64,000 nucleotides of DNA from IMGVR_UViG_3300037245_001419:147778-211777, one strand, 5' to 3'; positions 142-64,000 are shown, counted from the first letter of the stretch. Numbers and translations are program-made. Notes: generated by a model not told the origin, from the sequence alone.

Positions 142-592
142 TTTCAGCCTCCTTAGATTTTTTAGTTGCTAGATACTCAAGAGAGTATTTAATGTTATCG
201 GTTACTTCAGTTACATTAGAAAACAACATGTCTACCTTGTGGTAGTTATTATCATAAATCTTGTATAGCCGAAGACCGTCATCAAATATAATTAATGAAT
301 GCTGAGGGTATTGCTTCAATATTGTTTCAGTGTACTTCAAATCCATTAACGTCTGGTCTAGGTATGCTGCCTCGTGATTCTCCTCAAGTGTGTAATGCAT
401 GGGGGAACTATCACGTACTTTTTCACGCTTAATGTTTTCACATTTATTTTTAGTAATACGTTGTTGTATGCCAAAGCTGTTACCACGCTTATCAATAAGC
501 ACAAAGTTCATCTTAACACGAGTGTGTATTAAGTTATAACACGCTGAAAGCATCTTAGATGATTCGCTTAGTGTAAAATACCGTTCTGTCAT
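134..592 (-). CDS. hypothetical protein
   Basis: ORF in tightly packed operon; no family recognised. Confidence 0.7.
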   Translation of the reverse strand: MTERYFTLSESSKMLSACYNLIHTRVKMNFVLIDKRGNSFGIQQRITKNKCENIKREKVRDSSPMHYTLEENHEAAYLDQTLMDLKYTETILKQYPQHSLIIFDDGLRLYKIYDNNYHKVDMLFSNVTEVTDNIKYSLEYLATKKSKEAENG

Positions 593-813
593 GTTTCACC
601 CTCATAAGAGTTTATTATGTTTACCGCCTCTTCCATGCTATACGTTGGACTAGACTCACTGTCTCTATTTTTATCCATCCTAGCTACTTTCCAATAGTCC
701 GCAGTTCTAGAATTCTCAATATCATCTTCGGTTATTGTGCGTAATGCATCATTTAACCCAATCTGGCCGATCTTATAACACAAGTCATAGTCGGTTAACT
801 TTTTTACATCCAA
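589..813 (-). CDS. hypothetical protein
   Basis: ORF overlapping the next gene by 4 nt. Confidence 0.65.
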   Translation of the reverse strand: MDVKKLTDYDLCYKIGQIGLNDALRTITEDDIENSRTADYWKVARMDKNRDSESSPTYSMEEAVNIINSYEGET

Positions 814-841
814 TCCATTGACCTCTCCAACCCAGTGATTA

Positions 842-1078
842 TTATTCTTCCACGCTCTCTTTTACTACTTTAGTTTGATCTTCCTGACTGTCAATATACA
901 GCTGAAGCATACCACCGACAACGGCATCAAATGATACACTATAACCATCACATACAGTCATGATATGATCTATAGTTTCGTCGCTTATAGTAACATCTAT
1001 CTCTGATACTTTAGTCATGGATAGATGTTTTTCATACAATTTAAAGTATGATTTTTCTGGTACTTTTGGTGTATCCAT
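842..1078 (-). CDS. hypothetical protein
   Basis: TAATG coupling, AGGAG RBS. Confidence 0.7.
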   Translation of the reverse strand: MDTPKVPEKSYFKLYEKHLSMTKVSEIDVTISDETIDHIMTVCDGYSVSFDAVVGGMLQLYIDSQEDQTKVVKESVEE

Positions 1079-1485
1079 TAATGCTCCTTCTCAGTGACTT
1101 CATCAACGAATTCCCATTTTTTGTCGGATGTATTGAATCTGTATATCATAACATCTTGATACTCAACTGCAATCTCAAGTATACCACTACGTATCATTTT
1201 ACCGCTAGTGATTGATTCGAAATACGCAAGTATCTCATCAACATCACTATAGTCTCTGAGATCACCATAGAAGATAACCGCACGACATGCAAGAGCGTTC
1301 TCAGTACCTGTCTTGATAAGCTTGTATTCCAGGCTACCTTCACTACCACACGGCAGTATAGTGTCTTCTACATCATTCTCCCATGTAGATATTTCACCTA
1401 GTTCTTTTTCTGTTATGATGGGTATACCTAGGGCAGGTATTCCGTCATATCTAATTGATGCATTTACATGAGTCCATTGGGACAT
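1078..1485 (-). CDS. conserved phage hypothetical protein
   Basis: MSQWTHV...LPCGSEGSL...GDLRD motifs typical of an uncharacterised phage family. Confidence 0.75.
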   Translation of the reverse strand: MSQWTHVNASIRYDGIPALGIPIITEKELGEISTWENDVEDTILPCGSEGSLEYKLIKTGTENALACRAVIFYGDLRDYSDVDEILAYFESITSGKMIRSGILEIAVEYQDVMIYRFNTSDKKWEFVDEVTEKEH

Positions 1486-1486
1486 A

Positions 1487-1768
1487 TTATTCCTCGTCTT
1501 TGTTGAATATTTCTATAACCTGTTTTACCTTGTCGATCATATGAAGATCATCGCAATAAAATACCCCATCACCAACAAACTCACGCTGTTGAGTAAGATA
1601 AAAGTCAGGAACTTTATCCACTTTAGTTACTTCCTTCAAGACATTAGCTAAAGCAATCATTTTATACTTATCATCCATTTTTGTATCTTCACATACATCA
1701 GTACAAGAAGTAAAAGCTAAAGCACCGATTATTAACTGTGCTTCTTTTTTAGTAATTTCTATTTTCAT
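1487..1768 (-). CDS. hypothetical protein
   Basis: first gene of leftward operon after an AT-rich divergent region. Confidence 0.7.
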   Translation of the reverse strand: MKIEITKKEAQLIIGALAFTSCTDVCEDTKMDDKYKMIALANVLKEVTKVDKVPDFYLTQQREFVGDGVFYCDDLHMIDKVKQVIEIFNKDEE

Positions 1769-1904
1769 AAGTTATTTCACAAAAGTGGCGTATATGTAAT
1801 AAAATAACAAAATAAAAGTTATTGTCAATGTATTTTTTTATTGAAATTAATAATTATATTTACTATACTTATTATATAATATATGTACTAAGATTGGAGT
1901 TAAT

Positions 1905-2105
1905 ATGATTATTTGTGTTGAGTGTCACACAGAGATGAAAGTTGAGAAAAATGGTGTTGTTGTCCGCTATGGTGGAAACCACTGTTACTCAGGAGACAGT
2001 TGGAAATGCCCTACATGCGGTAAAATGGTAATCAATTGCAATAACAGCCCGTACCCTTCAGATGAACCTTTAGATCCGAAACACGATATCGAAATGAATC
2101 AATGA
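1905..2105 (+). CDS. small zinc-ribbon protein
   Basis: CxxC...CxxC; GGAG RBS. Confidence 0.75.
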   Translation: MIICVECHTEMKVEKNGVVVRYGGNHCYSGDSWKCPTCGKMVINCNNSPYPSDEPLDPKHDIEMNQ

Positions 2106-3124
2106 TAAAAATAGTAGATGACTTACTGTACATGATTCGCCAGTTGAAAGCAGTTGAATTGTCAATAGACAAGCTAGACATTATAGAGAAATATCCTCAA
2201 TGTAGAAATTTATTGGAGATAACCTATAATCCTTTTAAGCACTTCGCAGTTGGTACAAAACAGATAGATAAAGAGTTAGAATCTACTTTAGTTGATATTC
2301 CGAAAATAGATAAGCCGTACATCATGATCCATCACTTCTACAATTTTTTAAACGATTCGTTGCTTAACAAAAGATACAGTCGTTCTGTAGGAATCAAAGC
2401 GATAAAGAGATGGTGTACAATATTTCCCGAATATGAGACCCTTATTATCAACATTTTCAATAAGAACTTGAAGTGTGGAATAGATGCTCAGCTTATCAAT
2501 TGTATCTATCCGAAACTTATACCAATGTTTAACCCTACACGACCCAAAATTTGGGATACGATGTGTCCTAAGAGGGTCTTTTCTGAGTACGTTACAATGG
2601 AGAAGGTTGAGGGCGAACTGGTCTACATGAGCATTAGAAACCGAAAGGTGAACATATATAGCAAGCACACCATACCTATTGTCACATTGAATTACCTTAA
2701 GGATGAAGTACAGTCATTTATCGACATTACTGATATTGATAATATCATGATTGAAGGTCATGTATTCATAGGCAACCAGAGCTTTGATGAGTCTCACCAG
2801 AGCATCGTTAGAGGCAGTAAGAAGTTAACTAATATAATATTTAAAGTGTATGACATACTAACCCTCGATGAGTTCGAGGTGTATTACGACGAGTCAAAAA
2901 AATACACAGATCGACATAAGAGATTCGCAGAGATGGGTTTCTCTAATTTAAGTATGATACAAGTCGTACCATACCAGCAGTATGATCCAAACGGTGAACA
3001 CATACTATCACACATGAAAACAACAATTTCCGATAACAATTGGAAAGGAGCAATTCTTCGTAAGAACATACCTTACGACATTAAAATTTCGTATAACATA
3101 ATTAAAGTATACCCCAATTCGTAA
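2102..3124 (+). CDS. ATP-dependent DNA ligase-like protein, degenerate, lacking the OB domain
   Basis: T4-ligase-like N-terminus (ITYNP, KNLKCGI...IYPKLIP); nucleotidyltransferase-like motifs KVEG, IEGH, VYDIL, KGAILRK; ends right after motif V. Confidence 0.7.
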   Translation: MIKIVDDLLYMIRQLKAVELSIDKLDIIEKYPQCRNLLEITYNPFKHFAVGTKQIDKELESTLVDIPKIDKPYIMIHHFYNFLNDSLLNKRYSRSVGIKAIKRWCTIFPEYETLIINIFNKNLKCGIDAQLINCIYPKLIPMFNPTRPKIWDTMCPKRVFSEYVTMEKVEGELVYMSIRNRKVNIYSKHTIPIVTLNYLKDEVQSFIDITDIDNIMIEGHVFIGNQSFDESHQSIVRGSKKLTNIIFKVYDILTLDEFEVYYDESKKYTDRHKRFAEMGFSNLSMIQVVPYQQYDPNGEHILSHMKTTISDNNWKGAILRKNIPYDIKISYNIIKVYPNS

Positions 3125-3140
3125 TTTTACGGAGGTAAAT

Positions 3141-3629
3141 ATGAAAACAATAATTAGTACAGGACTTCGAGGCGCAAGCCAAGGAGCTGTAGGAGCAGCA
3201 TTTATTAATGAGATAGCTGTAGATGGATATTGTCCAAAAGGATTTATCTTGCCAACAGGCAAGCAACCAGAACTCGCATCAATGGGACTCAAAGAGCATG
3301 AGTCAGACTCGGTTGTAGAGTGTTTTGAAGATAACATGAACGCATCAGACGGCACAATATTTTTCTTTATGGAGAGCCTGGTAGACCAACTCGATAAAGA
3401 GTTAATGGACATCGTTGAAGCGTCAAACACACCATCACTACTGATAGACCTTGATAGCCCTTTGGACGTAAGAATCGTTGAGAAATTTATCCAGAAAAAT
3501 GACATAGAGACCTTGCACGTAGACGGCTGTCAAGACTCGCCCCACGATAAAACCATATATAAGTTTGTGTGTGGATATGTAACTAAAGTAGTTAAGAACC
3601 TAAAACATGAGGCTTTATTCGAGCACTAG
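3141..3629 (+). CDS. cpYpsA/SLOG (putative molybdenum carrier)-like protein, degenerate
   Basis: IISTGLRG...DGYCPKG...NMNASDGTIF...LHVDG aligns with the family pattern IISGGQTG...GGWCPKG...NVxDSDGTL...LNVAG. Confidence 0.7.
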   Translation: MKTIISTGLRGASQGAVGAAFINEIAVDGYCPKGFILPTGKQPELASMGLKEHESDSVVECFEDNMNASDGTIFFFMESLVDQLDKELMDIVEASNTPSLLIDLDSPLDVRIVEKFIQKNDIETLHVDGCQDSPHDKTIYKFVCGYVTKVVKNLKHEALFEH

Positions 3630-3636
3630 GAGCAAC

Positions 3637-4125
3637 ATGAGCAAACCCTCACTACTAAGAAAAGAGATGGAAGACAGACGTATAGAGATGAAAGGAAAAT
3701 TAAATGCAGTTGAAGTAGAATTAGTACAGATACCAAATACCCACTTTAAGTCTGAAGAATGTCAACGTCTAAACTCCACAAAGAGATTATTAATTAAAGA
3801 ACTAAACAAATTAACTATAGGGATTAAGAATATCATGGAACTCGAATCAGACCCTAATGTAGTAAAACAAATGGATGACATCTATAAAAAACTTGAATCT
3901 GGCGAGATGTCACCATCTGACTTGCAGAACATGGTAGTCAAGATGGAGGGCGGTGTTGAAAATGACGATGATACCCCAGACTGGCTAACTGAAGTAGACG
4001 ATGATGAGAATGAAGATTCAGACACTATTGAACCAAAAAAAGAGGAAGAGGACGAAAAAGGAGTAAATACCGCTTCAGACGATGATATATCTCAATCTGT
4101 AGACGATCTACTCGACAATTTATAA
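3637..4125 (+). CDS. acidic coiled-coil hypothetical protein
   Basis: AGGAG RBS before ATG 3637; very acidic C-terminus. Confidence 0.7.
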   Translation: MSKPSLLRKEMEDRRIEMKGKLNAVEVELVQIPNTHFKSEECQRLNSTKRLLIKELNKLTIGIKNIMELESDPNVVKQMDDIYKKLESGEMSPSDLQNMVVKMEGGVENDDDTPDWLTEVDDDENEDSDTIEPKKEEEDEKGVNTASDDDISQSVDDLLDNL

Positions 4126-4160
4126 ATAATTTCATAAACACCATATATCTAGGAGACAAG

Positions 4161-4562
4161 ATGAAAATAATCTGGAAAGATATAAAAGGGTTTGAAGGAA
4201 TTTATAAAATATCAAATACTGGCAGAGTAGTTCACAGTAAAACTCAAGCAGAACTCACAGGGCCGGACGTTACCTTAACTAAGAACAATACACGTTCAAA
4301 AGTTAAGATAACAAATATTATGAAGACTCACTACCCAGAGTTATTCGTAGTAAAAGAAATAGTTACAGATACTTTAGTTGAGACTTTAGTTGATGTGTTA
4401 GTGAAGGACATAACAGGCGAACAAAAACTTCTTGTCTTGTCCATCGAAGGAATTGAGTACACTTCTTATAGAGAAGCATCCGACAAATTGAACTTGAAAA
4501 CGTCTACCATAAAGAGACGGGTCAACTCAAAAAAGTTCGAGGCTTACTTAAGCTTAGAGTAA
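4161..4562 (+). CDS. NUMOD4 + NUMOD1-like DNA-binding protein without HNH nuclease core
   Basis: WKDIKGFEGIYKISNTGRV (NUMOD4); C-terminal YTSYREASDKLNLKTSTIKRR HTH; no H-N-H motif. Confidence 0.75.
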   Translation: MKIIWKDIKGFEGIYKISNTGRVVHSKTQAELTGPDVTLTKNNTRSKVKITNIMKTHYPELFVVKEIVTDTLVETLVDVLVKDITGEQKLLVLSIEGIEYTSYREASDKLNLKTSTIKRRVNSKKFEAYLSLE

Positions 4563-4579
4563 CAATTTTTTCGGGAGAC

Positions 4580-4876
4580 ATGGTCATGATTATGAAAATT
4601 AATCATTATGACTTTCTAACAACATATCAACTAGATGATAGGTCTAGCTGGTATTTGTCTCTAAAACCAGAAAAGATGCAAAGAATAAATACGATTGTAT
4701 ACAGCGTATGTACATCTAATAGTTTAGCTCTTCTGTATTCGAAGTTCGAATCTAAAGAGTTTAAATATTTGAGTAACGATATAAACGAGTTGTGTAAAAT
4801 AAAGCTAAAACACAGTGAACCTATATTCATTGAAAGGAAATATAATTATGAGCAAAAAAAAAACATTCGGGATTGA
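4580..4876 (+). CDS. hypothetical protein, paralog family A
   Basis: C-terminal VCTSNSLAL...ELCKIKLK motif shared with 5345, 5625, 6008, 8426. Confidence 0.65.
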   Translation: MVMIMKINHYDFLTTYQLDDRSSWYLSLKPEKMQRINTIVYSVCTSNSLALLYSKFESKEFKYLSNDINELCKIKLKHSEPIFIERKYNYEQKKNIRD

Positions 4877-5345
4877 CGATTACATTAATAAAGACCTGAA
4901 GCAGCTAGGTAAAGAAGAGGATACAACTTCTAAAAAAGCACCCAAGCTTACTATGTTACGCTATATGGTAACGCCTAGACAATTCAATCAAAACTTTGGT
5001 GAAAACAAACCAAATCTAGTTCAGCCTGTAGAAGAATTCAACATGAATAACGATGTGTACAACATGGTTTATGTTCTATTCAATCATGACAAAGAGATTT
5101 GGAGAATGTTTACCACCATGGAATCACAAGAGACTGTAGAGCTTATCAGAGATAATAAAGCTGGCCGTGTCGAGTTGATATGCCGTGAGAACTATCACGC
5201 TATCGTTAGACTTAAAGATGACAACAAAAAAATTCAAGAGCTTGCTGACTTCAAAAGAAAGTATAAGCAAAATATCGATGTGTATCATCTTGAATTAGAC
5301 TTCGCACAAGGTGTAAAGAAGTTCGTCGGTCAAGAAATAGCATAA
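4848..5345 (+). CDS. hypothetical protein
   Basis: AAGGA RBS before MSKKK. Confidence 0.7.
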   Translation: MSKKKTFGIDDYINKDLKQLGKEEDTTSKKAPKLTMLRYMVTPRQFNQNFGENKPNLVQPVEEFNMNNDVYNMVYVLFNHDKEIWRMFTTMESQETVELIRDNKAGRVELICRENYHAIVRLKDDNKKIQELADFKRKYKQNIDVYHLELDFAQGVKKFVGQEIA

Positions 5346-5665
5346 TGAAAACGGTCGTAAAATACGGATTCGACGACCATGGGAATAAGATAGAACCAGA
5401 AAATGTCGATGGAACCTTAAATGGTTCCGTTGGTATTTTATACTATGATATTAATGAAGGTCTTGATAGATTCACATTTTACCACCACGATGAAATAGAA
5501 TTAGCACAAGATATAATGGAATCTGGCAACTTGATTTCGTCTATATTAAACATCCGCAATAATAATAAATACATTTGTAGGTTGTGTGAATGGAGACTAA
5601 AGAATCGTAAGATTAAATTAGTATATGGTGATGAGAAATCCTATAACCCAAGTCTGTCTTGTTAA
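5345..5665 (+). CDS. hypothetical protein, paralog family A
   Basis: ICRLCEWRLKNR motif. Confidence 0.65.
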   Translation: MKTVVKYGFDDHGNKIEPENVDGTLNGSVGILYYDINEGLDRFTFYHHDEIELAQDIMESGNLISSILNIRNNNKYICRLCEWRLKNRKIKLVYGDEKSYNPSLSC

Positions 5666-6005
5666 GATACAAAAAATTTATACTGAAACACGATCAGTAG
5701 AGTATTTTCTTAAGGGTAAAATTACAGACGTATACAACTCAAAAAATTTCGATAACAGATTAAAAGCCTCATTTATAACTAACGATACTGGTTATAAATG
5801 GGGCTTCTTTCGTCACACCTACAGCGAAGAATTCTTTGAGCTTGTCACAGATATATGCTCCAACAATGCAATCGCAATAATCAACATGCAACATGAAGAA
5901 AAGTTTATAAGGAAGCTGGCTTGGTACAAACTGAAGTACAGGTCGTGTATTCCTATTAAGGAAAAGATAGTATTACAAACTCAAAAAAACAGACTCATGA
6001 ATTAA
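5625..6005 (+). CDS. hypothetical protein, paralog family A
   Basis: ICSNNAIAII...IRKLAWYKLK. Confidence 0.65.
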   Translation: MVMRNPITQVCLVKIQKIYTETRSVEYFLKGKITDVYNSKNFDNRLKASFITNDTGYKWGFFRHTYSEEFFELVTDICSNNAIAIINMQHEEKFIRKLAWYKLKYRSCIPIKEKIVLQTQKNRLMN

Positions 6006-6007
6006 GA

Positions 6008-6241
6008 ATGTTCGTTACTATTCTTGTCAATTCAGTTTTGTTTAAACTGGTTAAATACGATGGGGATAAATTTGCAAATAAACTTCAGTTTCAAGTAATC
6101 AAATCAGACATACCTAAGATAATTTCGATATGTAAAAACAATGCTGCAGCCTTGATACATTCAAGAGATGATAGTGAACAGATAAGAAAATTTTGTGTGA
6201 TTAAGCTTAAGCATAAAGAGATGATTAAGATATTTTATTAA
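6008..6241 (+). CDS. hypothetical protein, paralog family A
   Basis: ICKNNAAALI...IRKFCVIKLK. Confidence 0.65.
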   Translation: MFVTILVNSVLFKLVKYDGDKFANKLQFQVIKSDIPKIISICKNNAAALIHSRDDSEQIRKFCVIKLKHKEMIKIFY

Positions 6242-6272
6242 GGGAGAGGATGCGAGTGACACCCTCTCCCTT
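6240..6272. terminator. hairpin between convergent operons
   Basis: AAGGGAGAGG...CCTCTCCCTT 10-bp inverted repeat. Confidence 0.7.
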
Positions 6273-6293
6273 ACACTGACCGAGGGTAAGAGG

Positions 6294-6641
6294 TCAGTGT
6301 TGAGGCTCTTCTTTACAATGTTTAACACGCCCACGCAAGTCTGTCATGACGATAAAATTTTCTCTTCCATAAGACTTGTATAGGTAATAATTAACTTTAT
6401 TTTTACAAACTATAATGGTATTTTGTTGTTTCTCAACATGAACATGCATTAACCCATGATGAGTATGTTCACCATTTACATTATCGACTGTCCTATTTTT
6501 GACACTTAAAGGAGATTCTACTGAATATAAAATAAGACCCCACAAAATTAAACCTATAAATGCAAAAATAATAGAATATTTTTTAAGTTTGTCACTCTCT
6601 TCTTTATTAACATCAAACATATATTTTAAATACCCTATCAT
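6294..6641 (-). CDS. single-TM membrane protein
   Basis: hydrophobic segment IIFAFIGLILWGLILY. Confidence 0.65.
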   Translation of the reverse strand: MIGYLKYMFDVNKEESDKLKKYSIIFAFIGLILWGLILYSVESPLSVKNRTVDNVNGEHTHHGLMHVHVEKQQNTIIVCKNKVNYYLYKSYGRENFIVMTDLRGRVKHCKEEPQH

Positions 6642-6653
6642 CAGTCACACCAA

Positions 6654-6875
6654 TTACTTGCCACGTCTTTTACGTCTTTCTCTTTTCTCTCGATTCTTTC
6701 TTTTGCCAGTAAATATCTTACCTAGCTCTGATCGGTTGTCATGCTTGCTGACTTGCATTAACTCTTCCTGTTTTGCTGTCATCTGCTCTCTATGCACTCG
6801 TTCATAACGCTCAGGGTCTAACCCTTTCATTTCTTCTTTGCTGAATTGCTCAATCATTCCTGTTCTTGTATCCAT
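6654..6875 (-). CDS. small basic phage protein
   Basis: AGGAG RBS; MDTRTG start, K/R-rich tail. Confidence 0.75.
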   Translation of the reverse strand: MDTRTGMIEQFSKEEMKGLDPERYERVHREQMTAKQEELMQVSKHDNRSELGKIFTGKRKNREKRERRKRRGK

Positions 6876-6886
6876 ACTTTACTCCT

Positions 6887-7234
6887 TTAACACCAACACG
6901 ATTCTAAACTTATTTTACTTAATGTTTCTTTATCTGTAACTACTTCTACTTCGATATTAAGTAACTTTCGTATATCGAACCCTTCTTTTCTTCTAAATGC
7001 CCTTGCCCAATAACCAACTTCGGAAGCTCGTATGAGAAGCTTGTTGTTATCAGCTATTTCTATTTCATTAACAGAAAAATAATGCACTTCTTTTTCATAG
7101 CACATTTTTAATTTGTCATTTTGCTTTAAAGTATCTTCTGAATGAAATTCTATTACACATCCATCTAAACCAATCATTCGTCCAGACCGTCTGTCACGCT
7201 CAGCAACTTTTATAGAAGCATTAATTATTTTCAT
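6887..7234 (-). CDS. hypothetical protein
   Basis: GAGGAG RBS before MKIIN. Confidence 0.7.
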   Translation of the reverse strand: MKIINASIKVAERDRRSGRMIGLDGCVIEFHSEDTLKQNDKLKMCYEKEVHYFSVNEIEIADNNKLLIRASEVGYWARAFRRKEGFDIRKLLNIEVEVVTDKETLSKISLESCWC

Positions 7235-8328: not shown

Positions 8329-8425
8329 GTTATTTCCTTTTTATTTGCGTTCCCACATTAAATATAACTAAAAAATATTAATTGTGTTATACTTTTTTAA
8401 TAACAGATAAAAACGGAGTAAGATT

Positions 8426-55398: not shown

Positions 55399-55411
55399 AA
55401 TTCCTCCGGTT

Positions 55412-55467: not shown

Positions 55468-55470
55468 TCA

Positions 55471-55621: not shown

Positions 55622-55643
55622 AAACTAAAGTAAATAGGAAGTT

Positions 55644-56309: not shown

Positions 56310-56320
56310 AGTAGGTTACG

Positions 56321-57005: not shown

Positions 57006-57008
57006 ACT

Positions 57009-57311
57009 TTAGTTTACCTCCCATGGTGGGCATATTAAATAAAGTGTAGTAATTGATTTACAATAACTGTCTAATATGATATTAGCTATAGAACTTCCAT
57101 CATAATCAATTACAAATGGTTTTGCATTCTTGTATGTTATCTCAAAACGTTTAATATGATTATCAGTCACGTTGACAATTTTAATATTATTATCAGAATA
57201 TGTACAATCTTTAATTGATAGCTTATCAAATGTAGAAGTTAATAGATTGTGTAAATCTATGTATTCCTGGGGTATCGGCCCAACTAAAGTATCCAGGTGT
57301 TGTATATTCAC
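57009..57311 (-). CDS. HLDTLV...PWEV family protein
   Basis: QHLDTLVGP ... PPWEVN*. Confidence 0.85.
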   Translation of the reverse strand: MNIQHLDTLVGPIPQEYIDLHNLLTSTFDKLSIKDCTYSDNNIKIVNVTDNHIKRFEITYKNAKPFVIDYDGSSIANIILDSYCKSITTLYLICPPWEVN

Positions 57312-57312
57312 T

Positions 57313-57702
57313 TTAGTTTACCTCCCAGGGCTTCATAGAATCAATGTTTTTAATTCTATATGTATGATGAGTTCCCAGATGGGTGTTCGCTTGTGTCATA
57401 TAGCTGTTCTCAACCAATGATATGTAATGTTCCACATCACAATCTTCAAATATTATCATCACTTCACCCTCACCAGTTTTCATAAAGGTTGCATGTCCAT
57501 CATCTACTACAAGGTGCTTAATCTCAGTAAGACTACGCTCATAAAATGAGTGGTATAGTTCCATATCGGCATATACTTCATAAACAAACAATGGCTGATT
57601 TAAAAAATCATCCACAATGGTTGATAGATAGTGATAATATATTGGTGGTACACTACCAGATATTATCGGCCCAACTAAAGTATCCAGGTGATCGACATTC
57701 AA
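57313..57702 (-). CDS. HLDTLV...PWEV family protein
   Basis: DHLDTLVGP ... KPWEVN*. Confidence 0.85.
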   Translation of the reverse strand: MNVDHLDTLVGPIISGSVPPIYYHYLSTIVDDFLNQPLFVYEVYADMELYHSFYERSLTEIKHLVVDDGHATFMKTGEGEVMIIFEDCDVEHYISLVENSYMTQANTHLGTHHTYRIKNIDSMKPWEVN

Positions 57703-57703
57703 T

Positions 57704-58015
57704 TTAGTTTACTCCCCATGGATCACCATACGGTTTAGCATCTACTAGCATCATTAGAGTTTCAGTTATATATCTATCTGCAGCAGGATTTATGCGATAC
57801 ACAGGGTTTCTAGATGAGTATCGTCCTTTCATGGACTTAGTTACAAGCTTAAGTTTTATAAGTCTTTCCCTAAGTTCCACCACAGTACAATCGCTATAGA
57901 ACATAGCGGATGGATCTGTCAGTCCTGCTTTGATTAAAGGGCACATACTTTCTTGTCTGTCCGCATGTCTAGTACATGGTTTAATTAAAGTATCAAGATG
58001 TTTAATATCATTCAT
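57704..58015 (-). CDS. HLDTLV...PWEV family protein
   Basis: KHLDTLIKP ... DPWGVN*. Confidence 0.85.
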   Translation of the reverse strand: MNDIKHLDTLIKPCTRHADRQESMCPLIKAGLTDPSAMFYSDCTVVELRERLIKLKLVTKSMKGRYSSRNPVYRINPAADRYITETLMMLVDAKPYGDPWGVN

Positions 58016-58252
58016 CTGGTGGTCGGTTCCTTATTTCTTCCATGATTTGTTCCGAGCGGCATCTACTTAGCCCACCGAGGATATTAAGGATAAAGAATGC
58101 GGCGAATATCAATAGGAACAGTTCCATACTAAAGTACATCCTTACCAGTCATAGCAGAGAATGCCCATGTGATAGCGACAATGAGTACAACGGTTTCCCA
58201 CAGATGTGAGTAAATAAATTCTATAACTTCCAACATAATGTCTCCTAGGTGT

Positions 58253-58328
58253 AACTAAAGTATATTTTAAATATGTACTATTGTCAATAAAAATATAGAC
58301 AGATACATGGAATATATTTACTTTAGTT
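58253..58328. promoter_or_regulatory. class-II divergent promoters
   Basis: minus TTGACA-17-TATACT; plus TAGACA-17-TACTTT. Confidence 0.7.
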
Positions 58329-58425
58329 AAAACGTAAGGGAGCAAGAGACTTTCACACTCGGACGATTGAGACCTCTCATAACATGAAGATAGCGTTCCC
58401 TTATTTTAAACTAAAGTAGGATTAT

Positions 58426-58668
58426 ATGAAAGAATACGAATATATTGAACAGAATCATCATGTTGAAACTGATACTTCAGTTAAATCTCTTAATAATGGG
58501 CCATGTATAGCTGAGATTCAACTATATGGTGGTGAAGAAACTCACTTCATCCTGAATACTGGTCATGAGGATAAATTTGTAATTGCAGTTGAGGGATACG
58601 ATGGCTTAGAGATCCGACACTTCGGAAAAGCTAGATTGTTCCCTGTTTATGGTCTGCGGTTAAAGTAA
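58426..58668 (+). CDS. hypothetical protein
   Basis: AGGA RBS. Confidence 0.7.
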   Translation: MKEYEYIEQNHHVETDTSVKSLNNGPCIAEIQLYGGEETHFILNTGHEDKFVIAVEGYDGLEIRHFGKARLFPVYGLRLK

Positions 58669-58671
58669 TTA

Positions 58672-58704
58672 TAGACAATTCAATTGAAAATATGTACTTT
58701 AGTT
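58672..58704 (+). promoter_or_regulatory. class-II promoter
   Basis: TAGACA-17-TACTTT(AGTT). Confidence 0.6.
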
Positions 58705-58731
58705 GATACAGTACTTTAAATTGGATCATTT

Positions 58732-59043
58732 GTGAAATATTTAATAATTTTAATACTATGTATGTCGTTTGGATCTGCTTTAGCTGATGACACTGAAGAT
58801 ATTACTCTTGATGAGTTGTGTAAATATGCTGGATATGCGTACATGTTAGGTGATGTGTCTGTATATAATGAGGTACTGCAGCAAGCGTTTGAACAAATAC
58901 AAGTACCACCAGGTGACAGCCTTGAAATAACAACACGTAGATGTTGGGATTTGGTTGATAATAGTAAAAAACTAGGTCTTCCTATCAGTGAAAGTGATGC
59001 AATAGCAAAAAAATTAGTTCGTCTTAACAATCAACTAAAGTAG
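58732..59043 (+). CDS. secreted protein, paralog of 62410-62697
   Basis: signal peptide ending ALA; LCKYAGYA. Confidence 0.75.
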   Translation: MKYLIILILCMSFGSALADDTEDITLDELCKYAGYAYMLGDVSVYNEVLQQAFEQIQVPPGDSLEITTRRCWDLVDNSKKLGLPISESDAIAKKLVRLNNQLK

Positions 59044-59155
59044 TATTGATATGATTCAAAATTGTTATGCTTGCAATAATTATGACACAAAAAAATGCGA
59101 TGGATGTCGCCATTATTCAAATCATAGTGACAACAACAAAACTAAGTAGGATATA

Positions 59156-59896
59156 ATGAGTAAATATAATATACTAGTAACACCAGAAGATAAGCATTAC
59201 GGTGCTGTATGGTTGGATGCGTTAAGAGGGAAGTTATATTACTTTTTCCGTGAGGAAGAGATACCGGAAGAATCTTTGTTAGATTATATCGAGAACGAGA
59301 AGCATGGCATCATAGATAATCTAACAACCTTCAGTAAGTATTCATTATTTAATGCTAGAAGTGTTGTAGAGGCTGAAGGTTATGCTATGTGTAAACAGAT
59401 TGACGGTAGTCTACCAAATACAGTTTACAAGTTTTGGCCGTTCGAAGCCCTTAAGGATATCTGTAAAGAGCCTTCACTTGATAGACGGGAGTTTGAAAGA
59501 GTCATACACATTGAGCGTTCAGTGGCAAAGGGAGGGGCTTTTGTATCTCATACTGGACATGAAAGTGGTGCATGTTCATTAGGATTCAGATATGAGAGAA
59601 TAATTCGGTGCGCTGATAAGAGTGTGCAAGGTGATTATCAATATTTTGAGCTTCCACACCAGGAAGATTTTCTTACATACAAGCCTAAGAATTCTGACAA
59701 GCGAAATAGACCTAACATCTATGGCTCAGTAGTTAAATACACTGCAGAACTATATGAAATGATTGAACAGACAGCTATGAGTTTTAGAGAGTTAAACGAT
59801 AGACTGTTAGATATAATAAAACCTGAGAGTCTTATATCTATATCTGATAGTGGTGTTAAAGTGCTGCCACTTACAACTAAAGTAGGATCAGAATGA
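59156..59896 (+). CDS. hypothetical protein
   Basis: AGGA RBS, 246 aa. Confidence 0.75.
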   Translation: MSKYNILVTPEDKHYGAVWLDALRGKLYYFFREEEIPEESLLDYIENEKHGIIDNLTTFSKYSLFNARSVVEAEGYAMCKQIDGSLPNTVYKFWPFEALKDICKEPSLDRREFERVIHIERSVAKGGAFVSHTGHESGACSLGFRYERIIRCADKSVQGDYQYFELPHQEDFLTYKPKNSDKRNRPNIYGSVVKYTAELYEMIEQTAMSFRELNDRLLDIIKPESLISISDSGVKVLPLTTKVGSE

Positions 59897-60174
59897 AGGA
59901 CGTAATTGGTTGGATTGTATTTGTAGTGTTGTTTTGTATTGTATTATATGTAATTGGCTGGCTTATGGTTGTCAATTTCGGCCCAGAAGCTCAGAACGAT
60001 GAGATTAAGAACCGAGATTACAAGTACGAGGTGACGTGTAGTGTTAACGGTAAAACGGTAACAAAGCATTTTTTGGATTGTTACTCTGGTGAAAGTGGAT
60101 TGCGGTGTGGTAATAGCCGTAGTACTTCATTTTTATGTCAGGGTAATTACAGTTACATACTAGTTCCAAGGTAG
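59893..60174 (+). CDS. membrane-anchored protein
   Basis: N-terminal TM helix. Confidence 0.7.
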   Translation: MKDVIGWIVFVVLFCIVLYVIGWLMVVNFGPEAQNDEIKNRDYKYEVTCSVNGKTVTKHFLDCYSGESGLRCGNSRSTSFLCQGNYSYILVPR

Positions 60175-60180
60175 GATATA

Positions 60181-60567
60181 ATGATTATACCATTTCAAAT
60201 GAAAATATTTAATGAAGAAGATTTTCTTTCATATCCTCGTCATAAAAGTACGATTGTAATTATTAGCATGTGTTATAAAGGATTTGGCTTGAAACTGCCA
60301 AACTTCACGCAATGTGAAGTTGAATGGTATTGGCATGGATGTGTCGATGGCGTTCATGCAGGAGATACACAAGAATTTTCTACAAACGACACTATGGAAC
60401 AATATAAAAATAAAGGGTGGCGTTTAGTCGTTAGTATAAAACAAAATAAACGGAGTTCTCCTATACAATTGAAGGACAAATGTTTATGGCAATATGACGA
60501 ACTCTATAGAACTGATTTAGAGTTAGCTATGCATAGAGCTACACAAGGAAATCAGTATGTAAAGTAG
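60181..60567 (+). CDS. hypothetical protein
   Basis: AGGA RBS. Confidence 0.65.
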   Translation: MIIPFQMKIFNEEDFLSYPRHKSTIVIISMCYKGFGLKLPNFTQCEVEWYWHGCVDGVHAGDTQEFSTNDTMEQYKNKGWRLVVSIKQNKRSSPIQLKDKCLWQYDELYRTDLELAMHRATQGNQYVK

Positions 60568-60608
60568 GACTCAAACTAAAGTATCCAGTTATTTAACGGT
60601 TACTTTAG

Positions 60609-60794
60609 TTATGCCTTCATAATACTGATATAGTTTTCCATACATTTAAGAGAGCATAGGACTATCGTATAGGGTCTTAAGCTGTGTCCGTGTATAGAAT
60701 GCTTAGTGATAGAGAACCATGACTGACCATGTCCCATAGCCTTATAATCGAACTCTGTGGTACATGCGTTGCATATTTGTTTAGAATCTTTCAC
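60609..60794 (-). CDS. small Zn-finger protein
   Basis: CNAC...CSLKC. Confidence 0.65.
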   Translation of the reverse strand: MKDSKQICNACTTEFDYKAMGHGQSWFSITKHSIHGHSLRPYTIVLCSLKCMENYISIMKA

Positions 60795-61063
60795 TTTATT
60801 TTAAGAGTAATTTGAAACAGGACACCGTCCTTAATATACGATTCGATATCTGCGTTTCTAGATGAATGAGATGATATACGGAGATTGTTTGCTTGTAATA
60901 TAATAATTTTATTTTTTCTATAGTCGAATACAAGCAAACAAGGGTTAGGGTCATTCTCACTCATCACAGCGTATTGTGCTTTCCCTTCAGTTATATTCTT
61001 AATAACCTCATCAGCATTCCATGTAATAGTTGTTTTGTTTTGTCTAGTTATAACTCTTTTCAT
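60791..61063 (-). CDS. hypothetical protein
   Basis: GAGGA RBS, 4-nt overlaps. Confidence 0.7.
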   Translation of the reverse strand: MKRVITRQNKTTITWNADEVIKNITEGKAQYAVMSENDPNPCLLVFDYRKNKIIILQANNLRISSHSSRNADIESYIKDGVLFQITLKIK

Positions 61064-61317
61064 TGGTCATCCTCTAATACGTTTGGATATGTCATATTAT
61101 TGTGTGCATCTACTTCATGATCCCACAAGATAGCTTGCAGCATTTCAGTTGAGATACTTTCTTGTGAATATGGTCTGCATATAGTTTTAGTCTCTTTCAG
61201 AAATGTTTTGTACAGCTGAGCATGAGTAGAAGCTGTGATAGTTTTAACTACATGGCCCCAATCTAAAGAGCAGAAGTATTTAAATGTTATCTGGTATGTT
61301 GGTTTAATTTCTTTCAT
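61060..61317 (-). CDS. hypothetical protein, probably leaderless
   Basis: ATG 6 nt after the TATACT -10 box. Confidence 0.65.
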   Translation of the reverse strand: MKEIKPTYQITFKYFCSLDWGHVVKTITASTHAQLYKTFLKETKTICRPYSQESISTEMLQAILWDHEVDAHNNMTYPNVLEDDQ

Positions 61318-61373
61318 AACTAAAGTATAATAGAAAGTTATAGACATGTCAATAGAAAGTAATTACTTTAGTT
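61318..61373. promoter_or_regulatory. class-II bidirectional promoter
   Basis: third near-identical copy. Confidence 0.75.
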
Positions 61374-61397
61374 AATAACGTTATATAAGGAGTTATT

Positions 61398-61832
61398 ATG
61401 GCAAAGAAGTTAGTAGTTAAGAAAGGTTATACAGTTGAAGTTGTCTCATGGGAGAATGATGGAGACCATTACAGCACTATGTCAAAGACTTATGACACTG
61501 CAGAAAAGGCGTTATGTGTAAAGAAGCTGTGTAACGAGTTGTTTTCTTGTTATCACTCTGGTGCTGAAATTGGCATTGGAAATATATGTGACGACTATGA
61601 AATGGCACGAGATAGAACGCTGGTGTACTTAAAAAAGAACCTTAATGTTCTAAAGTTATTTGCAACACGAGCGGATATAGAACTTAAAGATGAAGAAACA
61701 CTCGTTCAGATAGTAATGAATATTAACTTTGATCTACTGGGTGGTTCAGATGTTTATAATTCACGGATATGTGAAAGATGTGAAGTATCCTACTCTGCAG
61801 AAGATATTCACGTAGAAGTTATCAACAAGTAA
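61398..61832 (+). CDS. conserved phage hypothetical protein
   Basis: GYTVEVVSWENDGDHY motif; AAGGAG RBS. Confidence 0.8.
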   Translation: MAKKLVVKKGYTVEVVSWENDGDHYSTMSKTYDTAEKALCVKKLCNELFSCYHSGAEIGIGNICDDYEMARDRTLVYLKKNLNVLKLFATRADIELKDEETLVQIVMNINFDLLGGSDVYNSRICERCEVSYSAEDIHVEVINK

Positions 61833-61859
61833 TCTACACATTGAAAGAGAAGAAATAAT

Positions 61860-62225
61860 ATGTACAGTTTAAATCATACTTTAGTTTGTCAGGAATGCAG
61901 TAAAAAGTTCCTGGGTCGTCTAAACGGCAAGTTCTGTTCTGGTATATGTGGCAGGAGACATTGGAATAAGAACAACACTGAGAGGATCGCAAAGAGCCAT
62001 GATAAGTGGTATATAGCTAATCGTGATACTATTATGGAAAAGAATAAGGAGTATCGTAAAAAGAATAAAGAACCTATTTCAAAGTATCATATCGACTATT
62101 ACAAAGAGAATCGAGACTTGATTAATGATCGAGCTAAAGCATATCATAAGGATAATCGTGATAATATATTACCTCGTATGCGTGCGTATTCAGCTAACAT
62201 GCGTAAGAATAACAAACTAAAGTAG
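61860..62225 (+). CDS. Zn-finger plus basic helical-repeat protein (homing-endonuclease-like N-terminus, no nuclease)
   Basis: CQEC...FCSGIC then YYKENRD-type repeats. Confidence 0.7.
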   Translation: MYSLNHTLVCQECSKKFLGRLNGKFCSGICGRRHWNKNNTERIAKSHDKWYIANRDTIMEKNKEYRKKNKEPISKYHIDYYKENRDLINDRAKAYHKDNRDNILPRMRAYSANMRKNNKLK

Positions 62226-62409
62226 GGCTGAATGGATCAAGAAGAGAAGGTTTGTACCTGGTCATATTCTAACAATTCATTTATGGGTTTTCGAGAGTTT
62301 GAGTATAACACTAGTTGTAATAGAAATTATGACGCTGATATAATCAGACCAATTAATCCTAAGCACTGCCCTAATTGTGGTGGTAAAATAAAACATAGTA
62401 AGTAGGAAT

Positions 62410-62697
62410 ATGAAAACAATTATATTAATGGTGCTGATATGTACTTCAGTTTATTCATCTGACTTTAGCGAGTACGAAACAAAGTCTCTATGTGCATATG
62501 CAGGTTATGCTATTCATGTAAAAGACAAGTTTATGGCATCCGTGTCTCTTAGAATTGCTACCCATAGAGGTGACAGTATAGTATTTGATTGTGGACAGAT
62601 AGCATTGAAGGTAGTTGTATCTAAGAAGATGCCTAGTGGTTTTGATGAGTATCAAAATGACTTCTATAACATCGTTACATATAAATTATTAAACTAA
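62410..62697 (+). CDS. secreted protein, paralog of 58732-59043
   Basis: signal peptide; LCAYAGYA. Confidence 0.75.
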   Translation: MKTIILMVLICTSVYSSDFSEYETKSLCAYAGYAIHVKDKFMASVSLRIATHRGDSIVFDCGQIALKVVVSKKMPSGFDEYQNDFYNIVTYKLLN

Positions 62698-62772
62698 AGT
62701 ATTTTACGTAAAATGTTGACAATATAACAGATTTGTTATATTATTACTATAAAATATAACAATAGGTTACGT

Positions 62773-64000
62773 ATGACTAATACAAAAATATCAATATCTG
62801 CATTAATAGTTGGTGTGTTATTACTAACATTATTAATAAGCTGTGTCAATGACAACAACACAGTTTCAAGAGATTATGTAATAAAAATAGATAATAACAC
62901 AGGGTTGGAAGTTGATAGTGTTGTAGTTTATAGAAGTATAGATGATCATACAGATACTTTAGTTTACGTTAATCCAGTAGAGCCTATACATATAATCATA
63001 CCTATTGAAGGTGAAAAAGATTCTCAAGTTAATATTGAATATAGTTGTTATTATGAAACTGCTAAACTTATGGAAAAAACTGCAGTGTTCACACTTGACC
63101 AAAACTCAAGTGATATATCAACCACGGAATTTATTGACCATGTCAAAATAGATTCTTTGAAAGCTTTGGTATCTAAAATAGATTCTTTGGTATCAGATAA
63201 CAATGATGCCAATGTTAGTTCTAGCTTAAGTAGTTCCCTATTGTCATCTGAACCTGAATCATCATCAGAAGAAACTTTAGTTTCGTCATATTTAATGCAG
63301 AGTAGTTCAACTGAAGTGATTAGCTCATCTGAAGTGATTAGTTCAACTGAAGTGGTTAGCTCATCTGAAGTGATTAGTTCAACTGAAGTGGTTAGTTCGT
63401 CTGAAGTGATTAGTTCAACAGAGATAGTTAGCTCATCTGAGATAGTTAGTTCGTCTGAGATAGTTAGTTCGTCAGAGATTGTTAGTTCGTCAGAGATTGT
63501 TAGCTCATCAGAGATTATTAGCTCATCAGAGATTATTAGCTCATCAGAGATAGTTAGTTCGTCTGAGATTGTTAGTTCAACTGAAGTGGTTAGCTCATCG
63601 GAAGCAATTAGTTCGTCTGCAGCAATCAGCTCATCGGAAGCAATTAGTTCGTCTGCAGCAATCAGCTCATCAGAAGCAATTAGTTCAACTGAAGTAGTCA
63701 GCTCAACTGAAGTGCTTAGTTCAACTGAAGTAGTCAGCTCATCAGAAGCAATCAGATCATCTGCAGTAGTCAGCTCATCAGAGCGTATTAGTTCATCTGA
63801 AGTAGTTAGTTCTTCAGAAGCGGTTAGTTCATCTGAAGAATTAATTGAGAAATATATAGATAAGCGAGTTAATCAATATGGCACATCTACATATCAACCT
63901 ATAAAGATTGGAACTAGAGTATTGTTTAATGAAAATCTAAATTATTATGGTGCTGGTGTATGTTATGATAACGATCCAGATAATTGTGAAACATATGGAA
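62773..64000 (+). CDS. Ser-rich lipoprotein with FISUMP (Fibrobacter succinogenes major paralogous) domain, partial
   Basis: LLISC lipobox; SS[ST]E[VI][VI] linker; YQPIKIGTRVLFNENLNY...VCYDNDPDNCETYG; TTGACA-17-TATTAT promoter at 62716; open to the edge. Confidence 0.8.
   Translation, partial: MTNTKISISALIVGVLLLTLLISCVNDNNTVSRDYVIKIDNNTGLEVDSVVVYRSIDDHTDTLVYVNPVEPIHIIIPIEGEKDSQVNIEYSCYYETAKLMEKTAVFTLDQNSSDISTTEFIDHVKIDSLKALVSKIDSLVSDNNDANVSSSLSSSLLSSEPESSSEETLVSSYLMQSSSTEVISSSEVISSTEVVSSSEVISSTEVVSSSEVISSTEIVSSSEIVSSSEIVSSSEIVSSSEIVSSSEIISSSEIISSSEIVSSSEIVSSTEVVSSSEAISSSAAISSSEAISSSAAISSSEAISSTEVVSSTEVLSSTEVVSSSEAIRSSAVVSSSERISSSEVVSSSEAVSSSEELIEKYIDKRVNQYGTSTYQPIKIGTRVLFNENLNYYGAGVCYDNDPDNCETYG
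63301..63840 (+). repeat. 18-bp coding tandem repeat (about 30 units, SSSEVI-like)
   Basis: agttcaactgaagtgatt / agctcatctgaagtgatt units. Confidence 0.9.

Follow-up and report, generated by a model that had tools for sequence, protein, structure and literature searches.

The stretch of DNA analysed here (the window, 64,000 nucleotides) is the last 64 kb of a 212-kb contig of a T4-like jumbo phage from metagenomes, whose affinity is indicated by RegA, gp2, gp23 and gp15. In it, terminators, sigma70-like promoters, an array of diverged paralogous small genes, a long ORF-free stretch and two genes for putative DNA-binding proteins are all interspersed with copies of one exact word, AACTRAAGTA (Table 1). 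The preliminary description had counted about 130 copies of this word by eye, against about one expected, at roughly 500-bp intervals on both strands, and our exact counts confirm that observation.

Distribution of the word and the elements that contain it

We found 135 exact copies of AACTRAAGTA (99 of the A-variant and 36 of the G-variant; 69 on the plus strand and 66 on the minus strand), whereas 100 dinucleotide-preserving shuffles gave a mean of 1.03 and a maximum of 5. The real core is the 9-mer AACTRAAGT, which occurs 164 times against 2.2 expected and is followed by A in 135 of those 164 copies; Markov models of order 1 to 3 predict 0.3 to 0.9 copies per variant. The enrichment is 75- to 130-fold. 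The median spacing is 323 bp and the mean 474 bp, with 37 copies in 1-33 kb and 98 in 33-64 kb, in agreement with the earlier claim of greater density after 33 kb. The spacing looks Poisson-like, with gaps of up to 2.8 kb, and hence nothing indicates selection for even coverage. By context, 61 copies are intergenic, 26 lie in CDS interiors, 20 in the first 60 nt of a CDS, 12 in the last 60 nt, 13 contain a stop codon and 3 straddle a gene edge, so that 74 of the 135 lie in or touch genes. The density is about 3-fold higher in intergenic DNA, and the word is about 2-fold enriched within 30 nt of gene boundaries.

Some of the copies are built into working elements, namely four strong terminator stems, promoter cores (about 16 copies, those near TTGAC), 13 stop codons and several gene junctions, but most stand alone, and only 24 of the 135 have an inverted partner within 70 nt. 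The contexts listed in the preliminary description, namely recurrent TKV, TLV and TEV peptides, a tandem pair within a gene, stop codons, promoters and terminator stems, were confirmed; lipobox codons were also on that list and rest on the earlier description alone. Paralogy and tandem duplication do not account for the field, as only a few diverged paralog groups exist and the single tandem repeat contributes about 9 of the 164 nine-mers and 2 of the 135 ten-mers.

Table 1. Positions of the word field and of associated features within the window
Feature	Position	Strand	Remarks
Field of exact AACTRAAGTA copies	203..63732	.	First copy at 203, last at 63732
High-density zone	33074..63732	.	98 copies, 3.2 per kb; very small genes and long spacers
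Intrinsic terminator	22127..22156	-	Stem is the G-variant word and its complement, followed by a T-run; -15.8 kcal/mol, z -4.9
Terminator stem AAACTGAAGTAT / ATACTTCAGTTT	35303..35341	-	T-run, then TTGACA of the next promoter; layout resembles a PeSL cassette; -22.3 kcal/mol, z -8.5
Terminator stem of the same type	38253..38290	-	Followed by TTGACA; -17.9 kcal/mol, z -6.0
Terminator stem of the same type	41661..41704	-	-18.7 kcal/mol, z -8.4
Inverted pair bracketing a sigma70-like promoter	50353..50408	-	TTGACA-N17-TATACT; downstream copy overlaps the -10 element (TATACTTTAGTT)
Second copy of this promoter cassette	55412..55467	-	Bracketed by an inverted pair of the word
Third copy of this promoter cassette	61318..61373	-	
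Early-promoter cassette	36781..36810	-	Word directly follows the -35 box (TTGACAT-ACTTTAGTT) and fuses with the palindromic operator TAGTTAATTAACTA; copies 12510, 24808 and 25793 are of the same type; TTGAC at -7 in seven copies
Array of diverged paralogous small genes	52124..58015	-	C-termini end ..PWEV-N-stop (AAC TAA AGT), N-termini read ..HLD-TLV-GP (ACT TTA GTT); each junction carries an inverted pair holding the stop codon and the next start codon; predicted junction hairpins weak (z -0.6 to -1.6)
ORF-free stretch of 1.8 kb	47479..49266	.	19 copies (9-mer core) in both orientations, densest patch of the window; no Rfam family and no tRNA found
Thirteen copies containing a stop codon	11116..62701	.	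Mostly AAC-TAA-AGTA; starts 11116, 15191, 32772, 40912, 42251, 45976, 46802, 49263, 50864, 56304, 56495, 57005, 62692
18-bp tandem repeat encoding a Ser-rich protein	63303..63843	+	Incidental copies, mostly AACTGAAGTG; not independent events
Second, weaker dispersed word GCTAAAGC	1647..62140	.	14 copies; same word with the outer arm pair A..T replaced by G..C
NUMOD4 plus weak HTH protein without a nuclease domain	4161..4562	+	PF07463, 4.8e-09; only the DNA-binding part of HNH endonuclease PHROGs matches; candidate reader on sequence alone; gene holds two adjacent copies (4370, 4382)
XRE-type HTH regulator	10485..10883	-	More natural candidate for the 14-bp palindromic operator than for the asymmetric word

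Selection on the word and its lineage specificity

The word is sharply defined: one-off variants of the core number 62 against 50 expected (49.8) and two-off variants 515 against 499. It is also strongly asymmetric, as AACTRAAGTT has 8 copies and TACTTYAGTA has 4, against 135 for the word itself. Codon-aware null models, on which the preliminary description had said its observation might fail, do not remove the excess, with 69 copies inside CDS bodies against 12.1 +/- 2.8 under a synonymous-codon shuffle and 2.0 +/- 1.6 under a codon-order shuffle. Further, proteins are bent to hold the word; TKV, TLV and TEV are 2- to 6-fold over-represented (TKV, 23 against 5.6 expected; TLV, 26 against 4.6), and the major capsid protein has TSV in two species where outgroups have TAV, TPV, TAI, VAI or LAI. 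Inside genes there are 53 sense and 37 antisense copies, which, together with the equal use of both orientations overall, argues for a DNA-level rather than an RNA-level word and against a polar signal. Local orientation biases change sign without any link to gene direction, although only part of the genome was sampled for this comparison. The flanks of the 135 copies are unrelated and show no complementarity, ruling out a longer repeat, a mobile element, or a MITE- or REP-like unit.

The word was present in every region of the genome sampled, across all gene classes, at 1.45 per kb just upstream of the window (including sugar-enzyme genes) and 1.44 per kb at contig position 40-46 kb, with 13 copies against 0.66 expected in portal-capsid-terminase-sheath DNA. 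It also fills the late structural genes of two sister species at 0.6-0.7 per kb. Two species at 75% nucleotide identity share 6 of 17 sites, where by our estimate about 10% would be expected if sites drifted neutrally, while the remaining sites have turned over. A further relative, at 98.6-99.8% identity, was too close to be informative on site conservation. In contrast, there are zero copies in the nearest outgroups, with 58-62% capsid identity, and in Aeromonas phage phiAS5, in which no 9-mer exceeds 8 copies in 50 kb; hence, the word is not a general habit of T4-like phages. An apparent word in one outgroup (L346) proved to be an internal repeat of a single gene. A nucleotide search of cultured phages found no match, and pattern scans of viral contigs for promoter-type and tandem pairs returned mostly chance or tandem-repeat hits. 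Literature searches for the 10-mers found only primers, and one for over-represented decamers in phages found nothing useful.

Possible roles of the word

Taking these findings together, we tentatively propose that AACTRAAGT(A) is kept at high density all over the chromosome of this lineage as the cognate site of an asymmetric, sequence-specific DNA reader, probably phage encoded, with each bound site acting on its own neighborhood. The likeliest role would be genome-wide transcription or chromosome management, either as operator and roadblock sites, for which copies in promoter cores and near gene boundaries would be expected, or as nucleation points for a coating or silencing protein, with the load heaviest on the small-gene early regions. 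In this view, because the word must be present anyway, evolution has built it into whatever local element can hold it, such as terminator stems, promoter cores, stop codons, Shine-Dalgarno spacers and T-K/E-V or T-L/S-V codons. Our analysis establishes the excess, its sharpness, the selection at the DNA level, the lineage specificity, the partial positional conservation accompanied by turnover, and the reuse in working elements; that a protein binds and reads the word, that this reader is phage encoded, and what it does are inferences, as is our view that the purine degeneracy at the center is typical of protein read-out. Several points sit uneasily with the proposal: no reader has been identified, a regulatory role does not obviously need copies inside late structural genes or about 300 sites per genome, roadblocks of the stoperator type depend on orientation while these sites do not, and a host-encoded reader remains possible.

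The preliminary description had interpreted the word as a self-mark of the phage chromosome, bound by an abundant phage protein for coating, protection from host nucleases, silencing, segregation, or ejection or packaging, and this is only partly supported. Selection at the DNA level rather than the protein or RNA level, specificity to the phage lineage, occurrence in all gene classes and the lack of a match to established pervasive words hold up, but no result shows that a protein coats the genome or that any of these purposes is served. Of the binders it suggested, the nuclease-less NUMOD4 protein is real, though nothing links it to the word, whereas no AP2 domain was found in 50 window ORFs scanned against Pfam, including the paralog group next to the NUMOD4 gene scanned at E <= 1 (20 of the ORFs were also scanned against PHROGs). 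The NUMOD4/HTH and XRE proteins were the only candidate DNA binders found.

Other explanations appear less likely. One possibility is that the word is the recognition sequence of a phage nickase, primase or DNA-modifying enzyme that must act every 0.5-2 kb on both strands, with nicks loading the sliding clamp or starting recombination-dependent replication of the T4 type, or with a role in lagging-strand priming or site-specific base modification. A function acting locally at each copy would explain selection for density on both strands, the per-strand spacing of 0.7-3 kb is, by inference, in the range of Okazaki fragments, the exact asymmetric word with its R degeneracy resembles enzyme recognition sites, and this T4-like phage carries a homing-endonuclease-derived NUMOD4 module. 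However, known primases read 3-5 nt, no nickase or methyltransferase was seen in the DNA sampled, the spacing is irregular, and density is highest in early, small-gene DNA and lowest in late genes, the opposite of what late-transcription enhancers would need, making this account unlikely. Somewhat less likely still is that the word is the conserved core of mobile promoter-terminator cassettes of the PeSL type and of gene junctions, kept as micro-homology for the shuffling, duplication and loss of small genes. In favor of this, PeSL stems have lineage-specific consensus sequences in other T4-like phages (PMC4122927), terminator-plus-promoter cassettes of PeSL layout use the word, the tandem paralog array carries it at both ends of each gene, and it is enriched near gene boundaries and in the plastic small-gene region. 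Moreover, the relative at 98.6-99.8% identity lacks the 3-gene module 20327-22080, an indel bounded by two similar cassettes that each hold the word, although this was the only indel available and its crossover lies in the cassette, not demonstrably at the word. Against it, nine bases are very short for homologous exchange, the flanks share no homology, the 26 copies deep inside genes and those in conserved core genes such as the portal and capsid genes are unexplained, and the sites shared between species imply purifying selection on individual copies.

We consider it doubtful that the phage copies a word read by host machinery, such as an uptake sequence, a Chi-like site for RecBCD/AddAB, or another chromosome-marking word, although the length of 9-10 bp, exactness, both orientations, preferred reading frames with recurrent tripeptides and inverted pairs serving as terminators all match uptake sequences. 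The density of 0.6-3 per kb equals or exceeds that of the host words in Neisseria or Haemophilus, one-off variants are not enriched, there is no polarity, the gp2 end-protector encoded by the phage lowers the need for Chi, and the nearest outgroup phages have no copies. A scan of 185,579 species genomes for the terminator-type pair found 4 single hits in unrelated genera with no local enrichment, which is weak negative evidence only. Least likely is a purely RNA-level element, with copies as halves of hairpins that terminate transcription or couple the translation of adjacent genes. The four very stable terminators, an orthologous hairpin that keeps pairing through an A/T to G/C double change between species, and the stop and start codons within junction pairs favor it, but few copies are paired, the junction hairpins are no more stable than shuffled sequence, sense and antisense copies in genes are similar in number, and the promoter-bracketing pairs lie largely upstream of the transcript; this reading is insufficient for the bulk of the copies and holds only for the terminator subset. 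A MotA-box-like middle promoter was considered because TACTTYA resembles TGCTTYA (the box at -30), but a -10 element TAnnnT lies 11-13 bp downstream in 9 of 164 copies (5%), against 11% at random positions. Similarly, with only about 16 copies near TTGAC, the word is not a general -10 or promoter element.

Parallels with known pervasive words

Among known systems, the word most resembles mycobacteriophage stoperators or uptake sequences but is a member of neither. Stoperators of Cluster A mycobacteriophages (L5, Bxb1), read by a monomeric two-domain repressor (PMC9283540, PMC6550527), are likewise short, asymmetric, exact and lineage-specific words scattered over a whole phage genome, at about 0.5 per kb, with one class overlapping an early promoter and others at gene boundaries and start or stop codons. 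However, they number about 20-35 per genome, are almost all intergenic, are oriented with transcription and belong to temperate phages with an immunity repressor, whereas here there are hundreds of sites, half of them inside genes and in both orientations, in a T4-like and presumably lytic jumbo phage in which no repressor is known. DNA uptake sequences (Neisseria DUS, Pasteurellaceae USS) are 9- to 12-bp exact words at about 1 per kb on both strands, are fitted into preferred reading frames and tripeptides, have inverted pairs doubling as terminators, and turn over individually while density is kept. They are, however, chromosomal words of competent bacteria, read by the uptake machinery, in which one-mismatch copies are also enriched, while the present carrier is a phage with one-off copies at chance and no known host with the word. 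PeSL cassettes of T4-type phages (PMC2839356, PMC4122927) place a terminator stem-loop with a lineage-specific stem before a near-consensus sigma70 early promoter, flanking small variable genes, a layout reproduced here for about 10-25 of the copies only; being intergenic cassettes of 50-60 bp, they do not explain a bare 9-10-mer without flank similarity inside coding sequence and core genes. Chi, KOPS and cyanobacterial HIP1 are also over-represented exact oligomers maintained genome-wide, but Chi and KOPS are 8 nt long, polar with respect to replication and enriched only a few-fold, HIP1 is a perfect palindrome, and the present sequence matches none of them.

Exact words that saturate a genome are known from a few bacteria and, in much smaller numbers, from temperate mycobacteriophages. 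Their occurrence in hundreds of copies in a presumably lytic T4-type jumbo phage, under selection strong enough to change conserved structural proteins, implies a sequence-specific process acting everywhere on the phage chromosome that has not been described for this well-studied family. The reader might represent a new way for phages to mark or manage their own DNA, a new global regulator or a new site-specific enzyme, and the word is a simple diagnostic for this lineage in metagenomes. A further possibility, which we regard as less likely than not, is that this lineage evolved its own chromosomal “self” code of two related words, ACTRAAGT and GCTAAAGC, which a dedicated machinery would read to tell phage from host DNA, for example, for coating, nuclease sparing, packaging choice or global shut-off, with selection strong enough to rewrite conserved capsid and portal residues. 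The outer arm positions of the two words co-vary as a complementary pair while mixed arms stay at chance, a pattern that a single simple monomer or dimer reader does not predict.

Abundance and distribution of the word

An exact search recovered 135 copies of AACTRAAGTA, in contrast to a mean of 1.03 and a maximum of 5 in dinucleotide-preserving shuffles. Of these, 99 are A-variants and 36 are G-variants, 69 lie on the + strand and 66 on the - strand, and 37 are found in the first 33 kb of the window as against 98 in the rest. Substitution of each position in turn showed that positions 1-9 are essentially invariant, with position 5 being A or G, whereas position 10 is A in 135 of the 164 copies of the 9-mer core. 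The 15 bases on either side show no conservation beyond an avoidance of G before the word and a mild preference for T after it, and no complementarity extends the small internal palindrome into the flanks. The peak is very sharp: 164 exact 9-mers are observed against 2.2 expected, 62 one-off variants against 50, and 515 two-off variants against 499. The preliminary description had named higher-order and codon-aware null models as potential refutations; however, Markov expectations up to order 3 stay below 1 per variant, and the 69 copies inside coding bodies compare with 12.1 +/- 2.8 upon shuffling synonymous codons within each gene and 2.0 +/- 1.6 upon shuffling codon order. Hence, the observation made in that description stands, although about nine of the 9-mers and two of the 10-mers lie in an 18-bp coding tandem repeat and are not independent.

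The window is the terminal 64 kb of a contig of 211,777 bp (IMG/VR 3300037245_001419), which shows no nucleotide similarity to cultured phages, while its protein hits point to T4-like myoviruses of Aeromonas and Vibrio. Neighboring and related DNA encodes several T4-type proteins, namely, RegA, gp2, the T4 portal, the prohead protease, Gp23, gp13, gp15, the large terminase, and the tail sheath. A JGI contig of 248,963 bp (3300043172, Ga0484852_0000002) carrying the same capsid gene is probably the whole genome. Two sister species were recognized, species A, which is the window phage and is found in several samples, and species B, which is contig 3300037245_003811; they share 90% capsid identity and 75% nucleotide identity over 12.6 kb of structural genes. 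The next relatives in a database of 5.8 billion proteins have only 58 to 62% capsid identity.

Based on our own gene calls (133 genes, 79% coding), 61 of the 135 copies are intergenic, 26 are deep inside genes, 20 are in the first 60 nt of a gene, 12 are in the last 60 nt of a gene, 13 contain the stop codon, usually as AAC-TAA-AGTA, and 3 straddle a gene edge. Intergenic density is about three times the coding density, and copies are about twice as likely as random points to lie within 30 nt of a gene boundary. In genes, the word sits mostly in the phase where ACT is a codon, giving T-K/E-V on the sense strand (27 copies) and T-L/S-V on the antisense strand (30 copies), with sense and antisense totals of 53 and 37. 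The tripeptides TKV, TLV, and TEV are 2 to 6 times more common than predicted from amino acid composition. The word is not confined to the window: there are 12 copies in the 8.3 kb just upstream, including copies in UDP-glucose dehydrogenase and epimerase genes, 9 copies in 6.2 kb at contig position 40-46 kb, 13 copies in the 21.3 kb of the portal-to-sheath region of species A, against 0.66 expected, and 14 nine-mers in the 20.8 kb of the same region of species B.

Copies in terminators, promoters, and gene junctions, and their evolution

Four pairs of the G-variant form the stems of strong intrinsic terminators, AAACTGAAGTAT-loop-ATACTTCAGTTT followed by a T-run, with energies of -15.8 to -22.3 kcal/mol and z-scores of -4.9 to -8.5, and a TTGACA promoter often follows directly. 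This is the promoter-terminator (PeSL) layout described for T4-type phages, in which each lineage has its own stem consensus (PMC4122927). In keeping with PeSL behavior, a relative at 98.6 to 99.8% identity lacks a three-gene module, and this indel is bounded by two similar cassettes that each contain the word. About 16 copies lie in sigma70-like promoter cores, where some abut the -35 box (TTGACAT-ACTTTAGTT) and others overlap the -10 element (TTGACA-N17-TATACTTTAGTT); three copies of one promoter are bracketed by an inverted pair. In an array of diverged paralogs at 52-58 kb, each gene ends ..PWEVN-stop and begins ..HLDTLVGP, and each junction therefore carries an inverted pair, but the predicted junction hairpins are no more stable than shuffled sequence. 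Only 24 of the 135 copies have an inverted partner within 70 nt. These uses therefore account for a minority, and most copies are solitary.

Between species A and B, 6 of 17 sites are shared in aligned columns, whereas we would expect about 10% by chance for nine bases at 75% identity. One shared intergenic hairpin has changed both arms together, AACTAAAGTA/TACTTTAGTT against AACTGAAGTA/TACTTCAGTT. The other sites are present in one species only, with the other species typically differing there at three or more bases. Individual copies are therefore under purifying selection, yet the set turns over, which is what selection on local density predicts. In the major capsid protein, both species read Q-T-S-V, encoded by ACT TCA GTT, while eight outgroups read TAV, TPV, TAI, VAI, or LAI at the same place; thus, a conserved structural protein has been changed to hold the word. 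The nearest outgroups have 0 copies in 21.2 kb and 9.4 kb, and Aeromonas phage phiAS5 has 0 copies in 50 kb and no 9-mer above 8 copies. An apparent word in one outgroup proved to be an internal repeat of a single gene.

A second word, GCTAAAGC, is also specific to the lineage. The window has 14 copies, 12 of them in genes, against 1.9 to 3.9 under the codon-aware nulls, and 42 kb of late genes from species A and B hold 17 copies, against 1 copy in 81 kb of outgroup DNA; in late genes it is as frequent as the main word. It equals the main word with the outer arm pair A..T replaced by G..C, such that its arms compensate relative to ACTAAAGT, whereas the mixed forms ACTAAAGC and GCTAAAGT stay at chance. 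This pattern is not predicted by a single reader with independent half-site contacts but would be predicted by two paralogous readers or by a reader that depends on pairing between the arms.

Interpretation of the word

The analysis establishes that the feature is real, highly significant, specific to the lineage, and selected at the DNA level, and that a minority of copies have ordinary explanations as terminators, promoters, or junctions, while the bulk do not; that a protein reads the word, and what such a reader would do on binding it, is inferred from sequence alone. The word is exact and asymmetric, has a purine degeneracy, is used in both orientations, lacks any flank signal, and is selected against protein conservation, features which point to a sequence-specific reader of double-stranded DNA. 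Selection seems to act on each copy, and copies are wanted everywhere, pointing to a function that acts locally around each site. Density is highest in the small-gene, sigma70-promoter-rich DNA, and copies overlap promoter cores, gene starts, and gene ends. The closest working model is therefore a genome-wide operator and roadblock, or a nucleation site for a phage DNA-binding protein, as with the stoperators of Cluster A mycobacteriophages and their monomeric two-domain repressor (PMC9283540). Nevertheless, the word is not a member of that system: its sites are ten times more numerous, half are inside genes, they are not oriented with transcription, and no repressor is known. We favor this class of explanation over the alternatives, but only tentatively.

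Among the alternatives, an enzymatic site, i.e., one for a nickase, a primase, or modification, appears unlikely though possible, and a recombination joint somewhat less likely still. Mimicry of a host signal of the uptake-sequence type is doubtful but cannot be excluded in the absence of an identified host; a scan of 185,579 species genomes for the terminator-type pair gave four single hits in unrelated genera, with no local enrichment, and, unlike in uptake sequences, one-off copies are not enriched. A role at the RNA level only is the least likely of these, and an RNA signal is excluded as the general explanation because both orientations occur in genes. A MotA-type middle promoter could also be excluded: although TACTTYA resembles the T4 MotA box TGCTTYA, there is no -10 element at the required spacing (5% of copies against 11% at random positions). 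Likewise, the unrelated flanks exclude a longer repeat or mobile element. A polar signal of the Chi or KOPS type is excluded, for the part of the genome sampled, by the near equality of the two strands overall and by local biases that change sign without any link to gene direction; further, the phage encodes the gp2 end-protector.

The interpretation in the preliminary description, of a self-mark bound by an abundant phage protein with three AP2-like proteins and a nuclease-less NUMOD4 protein as candidate binders, is only partly supported. The window does encode a protein with NUMOD4 and a weak HTH but no nuclease domain, as well as an XRE-type HTH protein. However, nothing ties either of them to the word, and the latter better fits a separate 14-bp palindromic operator. 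No AP2 domain was found in the 50 window ORFs scanned against Pfam.

Other features of the window and its neighborhood

The regions bearing on the above account, along with further features of the window and of the DNA upstream of it, are collected below.

Locations of the word field, candidate readers, and other features (window positions unless stated)
Location	Strand	Feature	Description
203-63732	both	Field of AACTRAAGTA copies	Span of the 135 exact copies
1647-62140		Second dispersed word	14 copies of GCTAAAGC
4161-4562		NUMOD4 plus weak HTH protein	Candidate reader
10485-10883		XRE-type HTH protein	Candidate reader; candidate regulator for the palindromic operator
15669-36810 (for example 15669, 16500, 23891, 25278, 27055, 28243, 28499, 34883, 35276, 36385)	-	Twelve early-type promoter cassettes	Share the perfect 14-bp palindrome TAGTTAATTAACTA between TTGACA and the -10 region; a conserved leader and Shine-Dalgarno sequence follow
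20327-22080		Three-gene module	Absent from the 98.6-99.8% identical relative 3300043171_000184
22596-22717	-	Rfam tRNA match	122 nt, 32.3 bits, just above the gathering score; not called by ARAGORN
23949-24334		Coding tandem repeat	33/45-bp periods inside gene 23921-24598
47479-49266		ORF-free stretch	1.8 kb, A+C-rich, densest cluster of the word; includes a G+C-rich, possibly structured segment near 48850-48970; no Rfam or tRNA hit
52124-58015 (also 49267-49743)		Tandem array of small genes	About ten diverged paralogs with conserved ends: N-terminus ..HLDTLVGP, C-terminus ..PWEV(N/L)-stop
63303-63843		Coding tandem repeat	18-bp period encoding a Ser-rich tract in a probable secreted protein
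18609-19976	-	CCA-adding tRNA nucleotidyltransferase	
2102-3124	+	Ligase-like protein	
3141-3629	+	cpYpsA SLOG-family protein	
4695-13080 of L336 (8 kb upstream of the window)		Macro and NADAR domain proteins, RegA, UDP-glucose dehydrogenase, NAD-dependent sugar epimerase	Macro and NADAR: ADP-ribose removal

The palindrome shared by the twelve promoter cassettes looks like an operator for a dimeric regulator. The three-gene module, with its similar bounding cassettes, is suggestive of PeSL-like shuffling, and in the paralog array the C-terminal codons also supply the Shine-Dalgarno sequence of the next gene. The ORF-free stretch could be an origin or a noncoding RNA region, and the tRNA match may be an interrupted or degenerate tRNA. 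The proteins encoded on L336 may serve as a countermeasure to ADP-ribosylation, or in sugar metabolism for DNA or surface modification. Together, the CCA-adding tRNA nucleotidyltransferase, the ligase-like protein, and the cpYpsA SLOG-family protein form an RNA/nucleotide repair-type gene set typical of large phages.
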